Source: Chlorokybus atmophyticus (taxonomy: Eukaryota; Plantae; Mesostigma and Chlorokybus algae). Taken from it: DNA of 64,000 bases. Below, piece after piece: positions 4,982 through 60,221 of the stretch; positions within the stretch are counted from its first letter, which is position 1; each line of letters starts with the position of its first letter. The notes under the pieces are model-generated. The model searched no databases. It was not told the origin of the DNA and saw only the letters and a program-made list of their open reading frames with translations. The translations under genes were made by a program, and so were the position numbers. Where the stretch lies: NCBI GenBank assembly GCA_009103225.1, contig RHPI01002503.1:996451-1060450 (forward strand). Reading direction: 5' to 3'.

Positions 4982-5899
4982 CCCCTGGTGCAGGCAGCTA
5001 GAGCAGGCCTTCAGCACGGTTGAATGCCTTCTGGATCCTGACGCTTGAGGGTTGCGAGGGTATATTTACCTGTCGCAACTGTCATGCTGATAACGCAGTC
5101 AGGCTTATTGAATCTGCTCGTACTTCACCAACCTGTGCTCGCTGGTTACTATGCGCTGACGCTCATATGCACCCAACAAAACAGTTCTGGTAGCCCTAAC
5201 TGTTGTACATCGCGCGCGTCCCATGTCGCACACTTTGTCCAACTGGGAGTACCATGTAATGCTCAGGGTGTACGACTGTAGCCGCAATATCATGTGCTGG
5301 TGCAGACACGAAGGGTGCTCGAATCAGGATGTCATCTTGTTAAACAAGATGTTCCACATTGTCTTGTTGAAGTGACCGCAGTGGCACGTGAGCCAAGGTG
5401 AACATCGCAGGAAGGTGTGTTGCACAGAGTTAGTAAGCAAGGCAAGAACTCCGGGCTGCGGTGTGACACCGCATTTGGCTTCCAAAGTCCAATTGACCAA
5501 CTGATTTCGTTTGCATACAGGAGATTGCACAAAGAAGGCACTAATCACAACTCATGGTCGTGTTCGCAAATGACTGTTTGCGTTTTTTTATATTCATAAT
5601 AGTAAAGTAAGAGTTTGATGAGCTTGCTTTCACCTTGGCTTGGTTTATCATCCGATAAAAGAAAACACACGGAGAGCTTAGTGGTGAGGGGGATTCTTGA
5701 GGCCTTGGATTTAAATATTGATTGTGCTCTAAATGCAATAAATATGCGGTCACATGTATAAAGATCTAAGACACTAGTCGACAGTGTAGTCAGCTTGAAG
5801 TTGTCACACCTTGTTGTAAGCACAGAATGCTTGATAATTAACGCTGCCATAACAGTGTGTACCGTCATTGATAGGTCTTACTATTACAAGCAATGCATT

Positions 5900-7245
5900 G
5901 GGAAAATGGCAATAACTACATAATATAACTTAAAATAATAGCGAAATGAACTGTTATAATACGCTACTTGCATATCCACATTGTTGTGTCGTGGAATTGC
6001 TCACTTAAGCACCGTGCATTTCACCGTTTATATATACCTCATGGTAAGACTTAAATACCCAACGGCAATAATTATCGCAACAACTTGTAAAGATATAATA
6101 TTAAGCACTTACTCTAAAATTTCATGATTGAGCAATCTCTTATATGTGTATATATAAATGATGAAAGGAACTTACTTGCAATGATGATGAGTGAGCATTG
6201 ACTCGTGTATATATATATATGAGTGCTTGTGGCATGTCCATGCAACAATGCATATGTGAAACTAAAGCGATACACTTATATCTACATAAAATATATGGAC
6301 ATACTTTATCAAGACACATTTGCACTAAACAGATATGCGTGAGGGGCTTATGACCATCTTTAAAGACGTGTGTGCAAGCATAAGCTAAAAATTCTATATG
6401 TTAATGTCCGTCCTGATACATAATTACACAACGACGAGTAAAGCAACATTTATATCATGTTACTATAAATTGTTTTATCTAATTAGTGTGCAATCATGCA
6501 TGTTGATCATGTGTTACATATATGATGTATTATATTGCTGAAACGTTTGCGCGCCATTTTGCATTAACTTAAAGCAATCAAATGCTTTCGTCATCACGCA
6601 TGTATTGAAATTCTTGCATTATTATATATAATTCTGCAAAGATGATGTTACTATGTACGATAGCCAAAATTCGCCTTCAACACATATGACTGTCGAGTTC
6701 GCTATGCTTGCCTAAATAAGTGTGATTATCTTATGACACTTGTGCCAATGGCTTCACGAAGACCCCGAGTGTTTTGTCCTATTAAACGTCTCGCACGGTA
6801 AGCTCGTCTTGTATTATTGGCTTGCATAATGTATGTCACATGTTCGCTTGCTGTAGCACAAAGGTATACAGCCTGTATACTCGTAAGCTACAACTATCAT
6901 ACATCACATTTGTTTGTAGCTCATCATCTGTGAGTCGCAACTATGAGAAATAAGCTGTCAAGAACATCTCGTACTGATGACACAATATGTCATGACCCAT
7001 CATCATAACGGTTTTCGGTAATTCGCCATGAGTACAGTATGACCTCGTTCCAAACGACATATGTACTCCTTACATTTTGTCTCGTGTAAAAAGGGTCTTT
7101 TTGCTCGATGTAAATGTTAATGTTTAACATCGAGGTTGCGTCACAAACATCACACACGTTACATCGTGTGATGTTGTGACATGTTATACATGTTACACAT
7201 TTATTTATGTTTAGTATAACTTGATGCTTACATATCATGTCGATT
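5900..7245 (-). pseudogene. AT-rich decayed ORF relic of an unclassified element, homologous to 46410-48530
   Basis: Stop-riddled frames; colinear similarity to the 46.4-47.2 kb region (tacgatagccaaaattcgc vs tacgatagcaaaaatcgc; peptide SWRITE vs SWPTE). Confidence 0.4.
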
Positions 7246-7949
7246 AATGAGGGTGCATTCCTTAATGCACCCTCCGTGTAAGAAAGTTGATGGTATCAAG
7301 GTCTCCTACTGCAAGGCGTCTTGCTCTTAGAATGAAAAAATTTTGAGTGGTAAAGATCCGTTGCCCAAAATGTCGCTTACCAGGCGAGATCTCTCTTACT
7401 CGGAGGCCTCTAATGGAGAGGTTATACTGTACCAGTCGGAGTCGGAACCCTTCCGTCTACGGAGACGCCCGCGGAGACCCGCGGAGACACCGGACGGCCG
7501 GCGCGCGACCGGAACCCCGCCGCGCGGCCGGCGCCCCGCCGGCCCCGCGCGTCTCCGGTTAACCGAGGCGTCGGCGGTCGACGCGCACGCGCCGACGCTG
7601 ACGCCATTAACGTCGGCGGCCACGCCCGTTGCAATGTGGTCTGGGCGGGCGGGAAGGCGGCAAGCTCCTTGCCGCCTCCGCCCGGCAAGCAGCGGAGAGA
7701 GGGCGGCGGAGGGCAGGGTGGTGTGGGCGAAGCGGAGAGGGCAGGGTGGCGTGGGCGAACCGGAAGGTGGCGAGCTTTTCGCCGCCTGCTCCCTGCAGGC
7801 AGCGGAGAGACGGCTGCGCTGGGCAGGGTGGTGTGGGCCGGCGAGAGGGCGATGGGTGACTGGCGGTGAGTGGGGCGCGAGCGAAGCAGCTGCTTTGTCG
7901 TTTGTAGGTTAGGTTTTCATAAGTGTTCAATCGTTGGCTTGTTAGCAGT

Positions 7950-8750
7950 CGCTGCAGTTGCAGGGGGTGTTCTGTGCCTAGGGTTGTTTTATTTAATGAA
8001 TGGCTTACAAGACTGCAAGAGTGTGTATTCTGACATTTGCAGGGTTGTTGTGTGTGTATACACGCACGCATACACGCACATTACATGTAGCAACTGTAAG
8101 AGTGTGACTGGCGAACAATTGCAGTGTTTGTTTTAAGTGTATGCGTGCACACGCATGCAAGCGTACACACACACTATATGCACGCAGCAGCTGTACCAGT
8201 GTATGCGTGTGTACTTGACTGCGCACGCACACTGCATGCAGCAACTGTAAGAGTGTGTGACTGGGGAACAATTGCAGTGTTTGTTATAAGTGTAGGCGTG
8301 CACAAGCATGCATGCGTACACTCACACACACAATGCACGCAGCAGCCATTACATGTAGCAACTGTAAGAGTGTGACTGGCGAACAATTGCAGTGTTTGTT
8401 TTAAGTGTATGCGTGCACACGCATGCAAGCGTACACACTCACTATATGCACGCAGCAGCTGTACCAGTGTATGCGTGTGTACTTGACTGCGCACGCACAC
8501 TGCATGCAGCAACTGTAAGAGTGTGTGACTGGGGAACAATTGCAGTGTTTGTTATAGGTGTAGGCGTGCACAAGCATGCATGCGTACACTCACACACACA
8601 ATGCACGCAGCAGCTGAACGGGTGTACTCGTGTGTACTTGACTTGTACTTGACTGGCAATAGTTGCAGGGTTTGTTGTATGTGTAGGCGTGCACATGCAC
8701 GCGCACACATACGCACAGTGCACGCAGCAGCTGTACAAGTCTAAGTGTGT
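7950..8750. repeat. CA/TG-rich satellite with 268-bp higher-order period built of ~134-bp monomers
   Basis: cattacatgtagcaactgtaagagtgtgactggcgaac at 8079 and 8347; sub-unit gcaactgtaagagtgtg near 8090, 8221, 8358, 8509; near-identical ORF translations at 8124 and 8392. Confidence 0.85.
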
Positions 8751-9105
8751 ACATGACGGGCGACAGTTGTAGTGCTCAGTTGTATTGGTTAGCTAAGTTG
8801 TTTGAAAAAGAATTGGCCCTGGGTGGTCAGCCTTGCAGTCATAGTGTAGGTGGTAGCTGAGTAACTAGATTAGTAAAGCCCCGTGGTAAGTAGTACTTGC
8901 TGCTGTTGGCATGCTGTGCGCTCATTACTTGAATGTAACATGCATGGACATACGCACCTCATTTCATGTACATTGTGGCACATGTATCTACACAGCCAGC
9001 CAGCACCAATTCCCGCCCACTTCACTTACAGGTACACTACCTAGACTTCAAGCATGGCTATCAATGTGCTTATGTATACACACATGTACATGCTCAACTC
9101 TTAAC

Positions 9106-12100
9106 TCAATCAAGGCATGCCTCCTCTGCTCCTGCATCGTCATTCAAAGCTTTACGCTTGCCGGAGCGTTGCGCGCGCAGCTGATCACAAAACTGTGTGA
9201 TCGTCATTGCTTTTCCTCGACGGTGTTGTGCGGGGTCATTTCTGTGAGCATCAAGTCGCATTGCTGCATCCTCTTCAGATATGCCAAAGTCTTTGGCCGT
9301 CCTCATTACATGCTGATAGATGATGTTACGCTTGTCGAAAAGCTTCGCCATGGCGCGGTCTCCTTGCCGCCAGGCTGTCTTATGCAATTGCATAAGCTTT
9401 CTGACCGCTGGTCCACCATCCAAGCCGGATGTGTATTCGGTCCAGATGTCCACTACAGTCGACAACTCCTTCTGCAACTGATATTTTGGCGGAATGCCGC
9501 GTGCGTTCGACTTAGATTGAGGGAGTGGTTGCGATGTCGATGCACGATGTGTATCTCTGGCAGGTGCTGCGGAGCGTACGTTATTGCCTGCTGAGCTGTC
9601 CGCTCCAAAGTACACTCCCTGTTGTGCAAATCCTTCACGCATGAAGCGCTCCATGCGAGTGAGTCTCACATCCACAGACGCTTCAAAAGCAATCAGCATC
9701 TGCTGCTGCGCTGTCACGTAGTCCATCACCATTTGCAGTAGCCGCTCTTGCTGTCGCATGATGACGGCAATCTGCACAACAGTCAATATTAACATGTATT
9801 TAATTATACAGGCTGTATATTGAAATGAGTTTGACACATCACATTACATGCTCAAAATAACATACCCGCTCAGGCAGTGTGTCGTATCGTGCGTTTGGCG
9901 CAGCCATTGACTGATCGTGAGCAACACATACTTGTGCGGCCCAAGCCTCAAACTCAGGAGTCTGGAACATAGGGTGTGCACATACGCTCAGAGCGGCGAA
10001 TCCGCACTGCTGCACATCGCCCCGCGTCAACGTTATGTCACGGCGCAGCACAGCTACATCCTGAGTGATCAATACAACAAGTTATGCATTGTTCACATAT
10101 GGGCATTGAAAATTTGCATTACCCCATAACGTCAAGCATGTTTCTGACCTGAGCAATGACGTCACGCATGTAATCGAGGAACTCGCAGTGCTTGTAAGCG
10201 GCATAATCGGTCTGACCGGACGCTCGCTCTCTTTGGCAATACACGCTTGTTATTAAACAATTGAATAAATAATAATACAACATACACAAACAAACACATC
10301 ATGTCTGCTCATACCGCGCGTATCGCCTCCATAGCCTCATCAAGCCATGGAAAAATCTCACGCCGTAATGTATGCGGTAGTGAAAATCGAGAGCGCGCCA
10401 GAATGTATTTCGATGACAGTTGCTCACCACCGTGCCCGGCTATCACAGCGCAAGTAGCCACGTCCAACTTGATGACGTACGACAATGAAAAGTGCTCATT
10501 GTTCCATCTTCCATTCTGCTTAATCCCTTGCTCTGTAGCGCTGCATAGCATAAGCATATAAGCTTACGTGCTAGCAGCCATTCACCATTGAAGCAACAAC
10601 ACATGTAAGACTTACCCTGCATTCATAGCTTGCTGCGATGACTCCTTTCGCGAAGCATGTACCTTCTGCCTCCCGCGCACAATGTCGCACTCTTTAAACG
10701 CCTCACAAGCGTTAACGTACTGCTGCTTGTATGACAGGTGCTTGCTGGGGTCTTCTCCTGGAAACAGTGGTTCTGCATACCTGTTGAAATGATCACAAGT
10801 GTGTTGACTCAATCATATACGTTGCATCTATAACTCAGTCATATACGTTGCATTTATCGTAAGTTATAGCTATAACTCACGAGCAGCAGTGACAGACTTT
10901 ACACTAACCAAGCTGCTCGTGTTGAGAAGTCTGGCGGTGGGCGCTCCTGCAAGTGATACTTATGCAAGAGGTGCATCGCCATTGCGTTCTGCCAGCACGC
11001 TACTGGGTTCCAATGCCTGAGCCCGCCAAAGTATTCAACTCCACCATTCTGTTGAACAAACATATTTCTGGTTAACTTATGTGGTATCGCATGCATTGTG
11101 CATTAAACTCTTATTAAATCAAGCCGTGCGCATGCAACATATATACCTTGTTCATCTTGCCGTTTCGAGACACAAAGCACTGGATGACGCCTTGATCCGG
11201 GCCTAAAAAGGTCTTGTCGGGCTTGTAGATGAAAAGATCGCAGATCTCTACAGCGCGAGAAACATCTCCACGCGTGAGACACACGTGCCGTAAACATAAA
11301 TCAAGCCTAGAGTGCATAAACAAAATGTTAGACAATAAACATAATGCGAACACAAGCATCTGACTACTGTACATACCGTGCTCTCAGTGCTGCTGCCTGT
11401 TTTGCTGCGTTCCCTGATCGCAGTGCCTTTTGCAACCAATACTCGCTCATCCGTCGATAATCATCTGCAGTGTACGACTCCGCACCCGTGCCGGCCAACC
11501 GATCGCGAAACTCACTGTTATAACAATCAAACTATAATGCATAAGGTAAATAAATAAGCAGTTGTGCAATGAAACATACTTGGACTGCAATATGTGTAAT
11601 ACACACACATGCTCGAAGTGTAGTACATGCATGCAGTGCTTACGCTTTTGCTTTGCTGGAGATGTTTCGTTTGGCTACATTTAAGATAAGCTGTACTGCT
11701 TGCTTCTTTCGCAAGTCTTCAGGAAAACAGTCATCTACAACACTTTGATCTTTCAAAGCATCCTGCAAGCCCTTCACATAATTCTCCAAAGTGCTCCAAG
11801 ACTGGTCTTGTTTGGAGATTAGAAACTCTAACGCGCGATCAATGGTTACGCGCGTTAGTAGGCCATGCTCTGTGCACCAACCCTGCAAACATGTACATGC
11901 ACACTTCAGTCAGCATGCCATCATGTCGTCACACATTATGTTGATGCTCCAAGACACTTAGGCCTCATACCTCATAAGCCTTCACAGCGCGTGTATAGGC
12001 AGCTCTTGTGGACGATGGTCGAGCTGCTTGCTTGGCCGATAAGAGATCTGACACTGTTCGTCTGTGTAACGGCGCATGCTGCATATCATCAACATTAAAG

Positions 12101-12114
12101 TCTTCGTTGTCCAT
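9106..12114 (-). CDS. CryptonF-like tyrosine recombinase (Ndc10-like YR domain plus C-terminal GCR1_C domain), ~10 exons, about 700 aa
   Basis: Exons 12114-11971, 11882-11644, 11514-11377, 11306-11147, 11048-10909, 10780-10616, 10540-10315, ~10227-10149, 10060-~9866, ~9770-9106. Motifs RPSSTRAAY...GWC, DRLAGT, LTRGD (R), GKMNK (K), RHWNPVAC, VHASRK (HxxR), GRW...SLSY (Y), MRDVIAQD, HPMFQTPEF; GCR1_C-type YQLQKELSTVVDIWTEYTSGLDGGPAVRKL. Confidence 0.85.
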
Positions 12115-12139
12115 TGTGGCTTGACGGGCGTTCCTGCCC

Positions 12140-12730
12140 ACACCTCATTGAGTTGCCACAGCAAGACACAACAACAGCAACAACAACGACCAGCCCTTGT
12201 GCTGGTCGTTGTTGTTGTTGCCACAGCAAGACACAACAACAACCACAACAACAACAACAACGACCAGCACAAGGGCTGGTCGTTGTTGTTGCCACAGCAA
12301 GACACACCAACAACAACAACAACCGCAACAACAACGACTAGCACAAGTGCTGGTTGTTGTTGTTGTTGCTACAGCAAGACACGACGACAACAACAACAAC
12401 AGCAACAACAACCACCAGCACTTGCGCTGGTCGTTGTTGTTGTTGCCACAGCAAGACACAACAACAACAACAACAACAACAAGCACTTCTGTTGCCACAG
12501 CAAGTCACAACAACAACAACAACAACAAGCACGGACGCTTGTTGTTGTTGCCACCGCAAGACACAACAACAACAACAAGCGCTAAGTGTTGCAACAGCAA
12601 GACACAACAACAACAACAACAACAAGCAGCACTTGTGCTGGTTGTTGTTGTTGTTTCCACAGCAATACACAACAACAACAACAAGAGCTTGTGCTTGTTG
12701 TTGTGGTTGTGGCAACACTTAGCAAGCAAC
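12140..12730. repeat. Palindromic (AAC)n/(GTT)n minisatellite: units GCCACAGCAAGACAC-(AAC)n-GACCAGC..GCTGGTC-(GTT)n
   Basis: gccacagcaagacac recurs several times, each unit followed by an AAC run and then a complementary GTT run forming a hairpin. Confidence 0.8.
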
Positions 12731-14613
12731 AGTAATAACATGGACGACATATGCTTACAGGGTTAATGTCGATGTGAATCCTTGCTTTGCTGCCGTGAGC
12801 TACACCTGCTCCGAACATGCCGCACCTGCATGTATGCGTGTAAGCGCGCATATTGCAAAGACAGAGTGATAGAGCATGTGCATGCTCATGCGTGCGTGTA
12901 TGTATGGCCAAGTGTGTGCTTCGTGTGCGTTGGTGCAACGATTTGCCCTCCCCACCCCCTTACGCACAGGAGCCACCGCCCTGCGCACACATCCTTACGC
13001 ACAGCAGCCTGCTGTGCGTAAGGATGGCTCCACCGCCGCTTGGTGCTTTAAGCCGTGCACTGCAAGCGCAGGCAGCGCCTGCACCCTTAACTTATCTAAA
13101 CCATGAGAGCACTACAAACCCTTTTCCCACTCCTTCAAGCTACTTTCAGCGCCGCCGCCGCCGCCGCCGCCGCCGCCAACGCCGCCGCCAACGCCAACGC
13201 CAACCTGACGCTCACTGGCTCACTGTTAAGCGTTAATCTCGTAACGCTTAGGCTGGGGGGAGAGGAAAACTTAATACCTAATCACTACTTGGTTATGTAC
13301 ATATAACGTACCTAACCTAAATGACTGGCGGAGACATAATTGTCTACACACATAGCCGGCACACTGTCTACGTAGACAATTATCAATACATATACGCATT
13401 CGGTGTGCCCGAGCAGCTTCCATGGGCAAACAATTAACTCAGGAAAGTCAGCGCCTGTGTCTACGTCGTCGTAGAGTGAGAAGTCTTGATGCGTCGGCAA
13501 GGGCAGACTCGTCTTCGTCCATCGACGTGGACACATGAATCCATTTTGCCTTAATGACGGCGAGTGTCGATGTCGACGTGTGGGTGCATTGTTGCGCTCA
13601 AGTTTCTGTTTTTCTGCCGGCATTTCCCCACCAGCAAAAACAGGCCATTCCGGTCATTCCCACTACACTCTATGTGCGGACCGTACGATTGGGCCTACAC
13701 CGACCGCACTGCACCGGCACCTTTAGAATGTCACACAACGTTATGCTCATACGGTTGTCACCAAACCCACGCAACGACGTCGATAAGCGTGGACGATTTC
13801 CGCCATGCCTACGTGCACCATCGACGCACAGCGACGGCCTACGCGGGAAGGTGTCGACATAGAGCGACAGTCGCTTTCAGTCGACATCGACAGCATAGTC
13901 CAAGCACGACAAAATGAGTTAATAGGAACCCCTCGGGCACACCGACTGAGTACACTGTAGCAGGAATGTAGCCTCCATTGCTTGCGAACTGACATCGTGC
14001 CACGTGACGTCACGGTGTCTGACAGTGACACCTTTGGCAGGCGCTCTTCCGTGCACGTTCACTCTACTACTCACCACGTCCACTGTCTACTCGAACGTTG
14101 ATTGCCTGCCAACGGCAAACGGCGAGCAGCATATACGGTACTCACAACAGCGCCGTTAACGCCAATGCTTGACGGGTGGCGGCCGCGGCGGCAGTGTCGC
14201 TGGCGGTGTCGGTGGCTTGGTCGCCTTGGCTACTGCGGGCAAGCTGCCCTGATGATGGGCTGTCGGTGTCTTGATTGATAGAAGTTGGCACGCCTCCCGC
14301 CGCCGTGATGCCTCTGGCAGGATCTGAGTCAGGGTCAGGGCAGCAGCCTGCCCCGTGTTGAGGGCCGCTTGCCAGCAGTGAGCAGGCGGGAGGCTGTGCT
14401 GGGGTTTGAGATGTTTGTACTTGCTTTGCGGGTGGCTTAGTTGGTAGGTAGCGAGGTGGATGTCGTCCGCAGGGTAGCGGGCGATGTCGTCGGCGTCACG
14501 GGCCGGCGACGGGCTGTGGGTGGCGTTTGTGGCTAGGTGCACCTGCGGCTACTACTGGCTTCCGCTGTCGCCGCCTCGGGCGGCTGCGGCAGCTTGTTGG
14601 CATCGCTAGAGCC

Positions 14614-59300: not shown

Positions 59301-60221
59301 TTTTGAGATTACGATTGTGTCGACAGCAAAACGCATGCTACGATTCAATTTGACCATTGTACTAATAAGTACATTGACTTCATGTGTGTCACCATACACA
59401 CCACCACGAAATATGTGTATCGCTTCTGCCAGCTTAAAATAATCAGGTCCATCGATTATCATCCAACACATCACATGCAAGCGTATTTTGACAATGTGCT
59501 TCTGCTGGTGCCGTTTCGAACAGAGAATCAAATACAACTATCTGAAGACGCTGATTGTTTGCAAGAATGCATTACGCGAGGAATAGTTGATGTCGACAAC
59601 ATCGATGAGCACTTGCATTTGTATACAGAAAGGTACATGCAAAAAGAGGTCGATGGCGAATTGTTGCCGAACATCATGCAACAAAGAATGCACAACATGC
59701 ATACGACACCCATACCATCTTCGATTAACGTAGTCACAGATGCCGATGATATACACATGTTTGAACGTGACTTCAAAATGTACACCGCCGATAAATTGAT
59801 GGGCTCACAACGATCGATATTCAACGACATAATCAATAGTGGTGAAGGATTGTATGTTCTTAGCGGCACTCCAGGTAGTGGCAAAACACATATGATTAAG
59901 ACACTCGCATCACATTATGCACGCCACGGAAAACATGTGTTCCTGACCGCTAGCATCGGAGCTGCAGCCAAAAGAATACATCCTGCAGCCACTTCAATCC
60001 ATAGCGCCTTTAAGTTGCCTTTTCATGATGATGGCTTTATGAGCACATTGTACCTGACCGATGCAGCGTACTTGGGCATTGCAACTATGGACGTGCTGAT
60101 TATAGACGAATTCTCGATGCTCACAAGCAGAACATTTAATCTGATTATGCATCGCATGCAAACCGTGCATGCATTGATGACTATACTTGATGTGGTCACA
60201 GTGATTCTAGTCGGCGTGTAA
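56390..60221 (+). pseudogene. Helitron Rep/PIF1-helicase, frameshifted, interrupted and truncated
   Basis: ALFPFLYPSG; HWGLPSLFLTLTADE (Rep motif 1); RPASLEHVMFYDYF; LLLVPFRTE; LSGTPGSGKT (Walker A); TASIGAAA; LIIDEFSML; ends at VILVG; HUH and Y2 motifs not found. Confidence 0.85.
56622..58115. mobile_element. Non-autonomous CMC/CACTA-like element with CACGT...ACGTG ends and 3-bp TSD TTA, nested in RepHel
   Basis: tta|cacgt at 56622 and acgtg|tta at 58115; many GACGGCCG-type subterminal repeats; removing it rejoins Helitron-like coding sequence. Confidence 0.65.

Follow-up and report, generated by a model that had tools for sequence, protein, structure and literature searches.

Does the minus-strand gene lying between PRP39 and SPY in Chlorokybus atmophyticus belong to a transposon of a green-lineage genome, to the host as a co-opted gene, or to a newcomer from a fungus or oomycete? 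The locus occupies positions 12114-9106 of a 64-kb window (the whole stretch analysed, 64,000 nucleotides of contig RHPI01002503.1; all positions below refer to it), and it is a real, transcribed and almost intact copy of a CryptonF-type gene, with a tyrosine recombinase (YR) followed by a GCR1_C domain. The reading that fits best, and that we regard as probable, is that the locus is an expressed, slightly decayed copy of a CryptonF-type DNA transposon present in several copies in a green-lineage genome. This reading is supported by the domains together with colinear homology to fungal and oomycete proteins that combine NDC10_II and GCR1_C, and by a full catalytic set, unlike that of the domesticated yeast derivatives. 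An initial annotation, made from the letters alone, had proposed a near-intact, CryptonF-like gene between these two neighbours, and the domains, a local hidden Markov model (HMM) and the matches of the flanking genes bear this out.

The gene reads from an ATG at 12114 to a TGA stop codon at 9108-9106, as established by reverse complement and the pieces of open reading frame (ORF), and its coding part comprises ten exons of about 2160 nucleotides (nt), corresponding to about 720 amino acids. The nine coding introns, in keeping with the intron-rich frame of about nine introns first proposed, all run from GT to AG and measure 61-129 nt, and the reading phases are consistent across the gene provided that the donor of exon 3 is GTAGTC at 11367. 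Apart from the acceptor of intron 7, neither a stop nor a frameshift was seen in any of the ten exons. Contigs of four public sequencing runs were compared with window positions 8760-12300; among these, X1 and X2 are DNA and X3 was taken, as a guess, to be RNA. All protein and domain searches were run exon by exon, and the local HMM was built from four full-length NDC10_II and GCR1_C proteins (P0121, P0147, P0125 and P0043), with 46 stop-to-stop pieces of the minus strand as its target. The features of the gene are as follows (E, expectation value; 5'UTR, 5' untranslated region).

12759 to at least 13013, minus strand: 5'UTR exon; 255 loose letters of the X3 contig past 12133 match the window exactly from 12759, and the contig ends inside a palindrome.
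12758-12134, minus strand: 5'UTR intron of 625 nt, GT..AG, with the donor GTAAGC at 12758 and a CAA-rich hairpin array inside it.
12133-11971, minus strand: exon with 19 nt of UTR and coding exon 1 (coding 12114-11971), covered by the spliced X3 contig with zero differences.
11970-11883, minus strand: intron 1, 88 nt, skipped by the spliced X3 contig (CT..AC on the plus strand).
11882-11644, minus strand: coding exon 2; weak colinear match to the local HMM (positions 69-97, E 0.47).
11514-11368, minus strand: coding exon 3; local HMM 114-144, E 1.9e-4; donor GTAGTC picked for phase.
11306-11147, minus strand: coding exon 4; local HMM 146-204, E 1.5e-6; tblastn match to P0147; catalytic Arg and Lys.
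11048-10909, minus strand: coding exon 5; Pfam NDC10_II 80-134; local HMM 202-250, E 8e-13; tblastn matches to P0043 and P0147.
10780-10616, minus strand: coding exon 6; local HMM 251-304, E 3.4e-5; HxxR.
10540-10315, minus strand: coding exon 7; Pfam NDC10_II 188-265; local HMM E 3.4e-10 (second profile 2.8e-13); tblastn match to P0143; Trp and Tyr.
10235-10227, minus strand: damaged acceptor of intron 7, with CAA at 10235-10233 against CAG in X1 and X2.
10226-10149, minus strand (from 10232 in the relatives): coding exon 8; weak colinear HMM matches (378-403, E 0.26; second profile 103-130, E 7e-3).
10060-9866, minus strand: coding exon 9; local HMM 412-448, E 8e-3.
9771-9106, minus strand: coding exon 10 and stop codon; Pfam GCR1_C, E 1.2e-17, at 9483-9241; local HMM E 1.6e-28.

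The C-terminal assignment is firm, as GCR1_C (PF12550) matches the last exon over its whole profile (1-80 of 80) with 64.4 bits against a cut-off of 23, and the GCR1_C-type tail first read by eye is confirmed. For NDC10_II, PF16787 gave two colinear exon-wise matches, in exon 5 (E 1e-3) and exon 7 (E 4e-4), with scores of 18.7 and 19.9 bits that each lie below the gathering threshold of 26.3 bits. The local HMM matched exons 3, 4, 5, 6, 7, 9 and 10 with E from 1.6e-28 to 8e-3 and in profile order (114 to 645), exons 8 and 2 following this order with their weaker scores, and the second local profile agreed. Among the 46 minus-strand pieces, no piece outside the gene was matched up to E 1. Profile alignment placed all the catalytic positions that had been claimed (R, K, HxxR, W, Y): the Arg in LTRGD (11272-11270), the Lys in GKMNK (11158-11156), the HxxR motif in KVHASR (10659-10648, with His at 10659-10657 and Arg at 10650-10648), the Trp in GRW (10506-10504) and the Tyr in SLSY (10479-10477). 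The gene has the features by which CryptonF is recognized, namely a YR with R, K, HxxR, W/H and Y, a GCR1_C domain at the C-terminus, and neither a reverse transcriptase or DDE transposase nor long terminal or terminal inverted repeats. The neighbouring ORFs have no Pfam match, and no long pair of direct or inverted repeats flanks the gene, where only local tandem arrays were seen.

Relatives were sought with HMMER by comparing the last exon with a library of 1.84 billion proteins, which returned 475 proteins at E<=1e-3; none exceeds 43% identity, the best being 28-43% identical. Full-length proteins with both NDC10_II and GCR1_C among the matches come from the oomycete Nothophytophthora (P0043) and the fungi Tilletia indica (P0125) and Absidia (P0087), and from ENA/Logan contigs (P0121, P0147 and P0143). 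The best relatives at exon level, P0147 and P0143, come from Logan contigs of runs SRR31285081 and SRR17242361. By tblastn, library matches aligned colinearly with the window on exons 4, 5, 7 and 10. A sequence search of the PDB with exon 7 gave no match, and no algal name was found among the library matches, sought via Ala/Gly/Arg/Pro-rich proteins. Word searches with the last exon (221 amino acids) and the exon-7 ORF (82 amino acids) were blank, which is uninformative given the length filter and the short contigs lacking gene calls. In the same search, the top matches of the GCR1_C exon (P0001-P0011 and P0021) are proteins of 530-840 amino acids that lack a recombinase and consist of 3-5 GCR1_C domains in tandem (Pfam E about 1e-107). 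Their sources are ENA contigs and the chytrid Phlyctochytrium bullatum, where one is named 'Transcription factor', and they may represent a class of multi-GCR1_C DNA-binding proteins, possibly Crypton-derived.

The 5' part of the gene is transcribed and spliced. An X3 contig of 554 nt (depth 20.8, 100% identical to the window) omits exactly 11883-11970 (88 nt, with 113 letters on its shorter side), by which intron 1 is confirmed; the remaining eight coding introns are supported by sequence and homology only. Because this contig jumps from 12133 to 12759, where its next 30 letters have a single match in the window (12759-12788) beside the GTAAGC donor, the gene also has the 625-nt 5'UTR intron and an upstream exon, both overlooked before. 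The start at 12114 is well defined, since an in-frame stop precedes this ATG in the spliced leader. The leader exon 12759-13013 carries seven upstream ATGs (uATGs), and two of them (12851 and 12818) begin frames that meet no stop before the exon end and would continue past the splice in a frame other than that of the main ORF.

The non-coding parts of the transcript have features of their own. Within the 5'UTR intron, positions 12165-12730 hold a tandem CAA/TTG-rich array of about 8 units with a period of 74-77 nt, each unit with an almost perfect hairpin of about 44 nt, as in the arms 12177-12220 and 12249-12292, which are 100% complementary. The array is also present in run X1, and one X2 contig does not extend into it. 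The upstream exon contains a perfect 37-nt palindrome at 12990-13026 (arms 12990-13007 and 13009-13026, with 1 nt between), inside which the RNA contig stops, and a third copy of a 15-nt palindrome arm lies at 12958-12972. An RNA hairpin and a protein-binding site are both candidate roles for this palindrome; a role as recombination site was set aside, as the 18+1+18 design leaves no crossover spacer of 6-8 bp. In intron 5, a 26-nt tandem duplication is found at 10807-10857, and the X2 copy has 13 additional letters behind 10840, so that the repeat number varies between copies or strains.

For the junction at about 10230-10315, the initial annotation had left a choice between a weak GAG acceptor and a 1-nt lesion, and the comparison of runs decides for the lesion. 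At 10233 the X1 and X2 contigs read C on the plus strand (G on the gene strand), where the window has T (T>C). Their form, ...TGCCAG/AGAGAG..., is a canonical CAG acceptor in phase 0, and the window has CAA-AG-AGAG instead. Because X1 and X2 keep CAG where the window has CAA, the window copy bears a real splice-acceptor lesion relative to its closest relatives. In the window, splicing at the nearest downstream AG (10232-10231) causes a frameshift with a stop after 22 codons, while the GAG at 10229-10227 would preserve the frame minus 2 amino acids; this junction is not spanned by any RNA contig of the compared runs. The window copy thus appears mildly decayed, and it probably makes little or no full-length protein.

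Variation among the runs bears on the number of copies. The intron-bearing sequence is present in at least three independent runs. Over the gene, the X1 and X2 contigs are short (177-585 nt) though both runs have contigs of 13-15 kb, and some of them are identical to the window while others are 1-2.6% different. Run X1 holds both letters at 9244, hence two variants. Paralogue fragments can be recognized in the loose ends: those of X2 at 12069 and 10574 resemble the window at about 90% and show C>T-type changes, and that of X1 at 11179 resembles it at about 70%, with conserved amino acids. The two X1 variants, the short mixed contigs and the diverged paralogue fragments are indirect signs of several copies, and the gene most likely belongs to a multi-copy family in the host genome. 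The 40 listed differences from X1 and X2 fall in exons in 27 cases (1.25%) and outside them in 13 (0.94%), with 17 more beyond the list. Among the 26 exonic differences that can be classified, 11 are synonymous and 15 nonsynonymous, a ratio per site (pN/pS) of about 0.40 (p 0.02 against neutrality) based on small numbers. Differences common to X1 and X2 comprise 5 synonymous and 2 nonsynonymous changes (pN/pS 0.12), and private differences 6 and 13 (pN/pS about 0.6), a pattern compatible with selection acting on an active master lineage, the copies decaying neutrally once inserted.

The gene is placed in a repeat-rich spacer of about 9.5 kb. On the lower-coordinate side lies PRP39 on the plus strand (HAT_PRP39_N 4e-26, HAT_PRP39_C 1.4e-12), and on the higher-coordinate side SPY, also on the plus strand, with TPR repeats and Glyco_transf_41, one exon of which matches Arabidopsis SPINDLY (7y4i) with E 7.5e-154. 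The Crypton gene stands head-to-head with SPY at a distance of about 1.5 kb, and its GC content is 0.475, that of both neighbours being 0.52. Past the 3' end of the gene, X1 runs on with few differences through 8760 and 44 nt further (down to at least 8716). Just 3' of the gene, at 8079-8614, a 268-bp unit occurs twice with 99% identity, followed by degenerate units on to 8760, and contigs of X1, X2 and X3 extend into this repeat. Elsewhere in the spacer, an AT-rich block at 5000-7300 (GC 0.35-0.44), between the 3' end of PRP39 and a GC-rich repeat at 7630-7840, may be another degraded mobile element; its tested ORFs are without a Pfam match. Near the end of the window, 59382-60221 holds an ORF of 279 amino acids with a PIF1-like/AAA_30 helicase N-terminal domain (E 1.6e-16).

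Several observations weigh against a multi-copy transposon. A self-comparison of 7800-14200 with the 64-kb window showed no second copy, only local tandem arrays. The 3' flank as far as at least 8716 and the upstream hairpin array recur in run X1, which would also fit an orthologous single locus in a sister strain, and to speak of several copies in one haploid genome presumes that each coded run represents one strain. With library matches at best 28-43% identical and word searches blank, no annotated relative supports the family. Lastly, a pN/pS below 1, the 5'UTR intron and transcription would suit a host gene too, and here the argument meets the possibility of domestication, by which a Crypton-derived, single-locus gene for a DNA-binding protein or recombinase, divergent from SPY, would have been co-opted by the host. 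Besides these signs of constraint and expression, both flanks common to X1 and the head-to-head position near SPY speak for it, and there is a precedent in yeast, where Ndc10, Gcr1, Msn1 and Hot1 derived from CryptonF, the catalytic site not being preserved in these derivatives (Kojima and Jurka, 2011; PMC3212892). However, the window copy has a lesion in a splice acceptor, exons differ as often as introns do, and paralogue fragments and two variants occur within one run. In addition, the catalytic set is intact, while a domesticated gene is expected to show lost catalytic residues at a single conserved locus. Domestication is therefore disfavoured and, in our estimate, improbable. Another alternative is that the window copy is itself autonomous, fully functional and mobile at present, splicing at the GAG of 10229-10227 to yield an enzyme of about 719 amino acids. 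The exons free of stops and frameshifts, the intact catalytic set, the transcription of the gene and the small cost of this acceptor, which keeps the frame for two residues, would all agree with it; nevertheless, an AAG acceptor 4 nt upstream of the GAG would be met first and shifts the frame, GAG is the weakest type of acceptor, the RNA contigs leave the intron-7 junction uncovered, and the seven uATGs stand ahead of the start. This alternative is unlikely, if somewhat less so than domestication.

The transposon copy is likewise to be preferred over the view that the gene recently arrived by horizontal transfer from a fungus or oomycete, or that the contig is chimeric or a contaminant. Such an origin would explain that the named relatives are all fungi or an oomycete, and a transfer of CryptonF between fungi and oomycetes has been inferred by Kojima and Jurka (PMC3212892). 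Yet the same contig carries the flanking PRP39 and the SPINDLY exon, and a fungal chimera is very unlikely because PRP39 and a plant-type SPINDLY flank the gene. A recent arrival is also opposed by the nine short, host-like GT-AG introns, by a GC content of 0.475 against 0.52 for the neighbours, by best relatives that are only 28-43% identical, and by the presence of the sequence, introns included, in at least three independent runs, all of which makes this family of explanations the least credible of those considered. From the three origins offered at the outset, a transposon copy, a horizontal acquisition and a domesticated gene, the first thus emerges as the best fit.

A breakpoint is seen in one X2 contig, which at 12160, a site 26 nt from the 5'UTR acceptor on its upstream side, leaves the window and enters AT-rich sequence that was not found anywhere within the window. 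It could mark an end of the transposon, but also an intronic indel or an insertion, nested or of another kind. One speculative idea, to which we give little weight, is that the element may end about 26 nt upstream of a built-in acceptor (12134), be promoterless, and be expressed as a gene trap by splicing from an upstream host 5' exon, here an exon of the divergent SPY promoter region. Three hints point this way: the X2 contig parts from the window exactly at 12160, the sole confirmed transcript begins in an exon 625 nt upstream, and CryptonF-1 of Chlamydomonas favours 5'UTRs and gene-proximal DNA (PMC9977147).

As a CryptonF-type transposon, the element would work with a single gene, whose product, a tyrosine recombinase of about 720 amino acids, carries a GCR1_C DNA-binding domain at its C-terminus. 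If it follows the Goodwin model and the events seen for CryptonF-1_cRei, the recombinase would bind the element via its DNA-binding parts, and the R-K-H-R-W-Y site would carry out strand exchange between a short sequence at the element's terminus and a target nearly identical to it, so that the element would insert and excise with neither a DDE transposase nor a reverse transcriptase. Mobility and mechanism are in this way predicted from the known members of the group.

The initial annotation knew of no described green-plant member, a statement that is out of date. Two autonomous Crypton families have been reported in Chlamydomonas reinhardtii (Lopez-Cortegano et al., 2023; PMC9977147), and as CryptonF-1_cRei was described there and seen transposing, the novelty of a green-lineage occurrence fails. 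Such elements are largely catalogued already for this lineage, and the window element is an additional CryptonF-type member. Among the papers in the library searched, none pairs Crypton with Chlorokybus, and none of those listed by a broader search with names of streptophyte algae mentions Crypton, its ranking being driven by other terms. With the window gene, the few Cryptons known outside fungi, oomycetes and animals gain a nearly intact CryptonF-type element that is expressed. Should the host be an early-branching streptophyte alga, CryptonF would occur in both halves of the green lineage and no longer in chlorophytes alone, which is relevant to the question of an old residence in Viridiplantae as against a movement between kingdoms. 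The gene also illustrates that intron-rich transposase genes escape ORF-based annotation, none of 15 billion predicted proteins being closer than 43% identity, and it leaves the knowledge of how Cryptons work unchanged.

Compared with known systems, the nearest in description is CryptonF-1_cRei, which has a YR and GCR1_C and is drawn with introns, has the ends CACCG and the target CAYCG with insertions and excisions observed, and prefers 5'UTRs and gene-proximal DNA (PMC9977147). Both elements share YR, GCR1_C and introns and are likened by description, the protein of CryptonF-1_cRei being absent from the named library matches; the hosts differ, C. reinhardtii there and a genome of about 50% GC here. 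By the definition of Kojima and Jurka (2011; PMC3212892), CryptonF combines YR with GCR1_C and occurs in fungi and oomycetes, and its fungal and oomycete members (Goodwin, 2003; for example, P0043 and P0125) have the same order of an NDC10_II-type YR and then GCR1_C, keep the catalytic residues and are colinear with the window gene over nearly the whole protein. They are also similar in length (606-670 amino acids against about 720), but have only about 30-40% identity to it in matched exons and are set apart from it by its nine coding introns and 5'UTR intron. A second ORF, such as a C48 peptidase, was not seen beside the window gene. The yeast genes Cbf2/Ndc10, Gcr1, Msn1 and Hot1 have GCR1_C in common with it, and Ndc10 and Gcr1 share the NDC10_II fold family, but the window gene keeps all catalytic positions and shows signs of several copies. 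Finally, retrotransposons of the DIRS, Ngaro and PAT types also use a tyrosine recombinase as integrating enzyme, whereas no ORF for a reverse transcriptase, RNase H or methyltransferase adjoins the window gene and no long terminal or inverted repeats surround it; its GCR1_C tail is a CryptonF feature and sets it apart from these retrotransposons.

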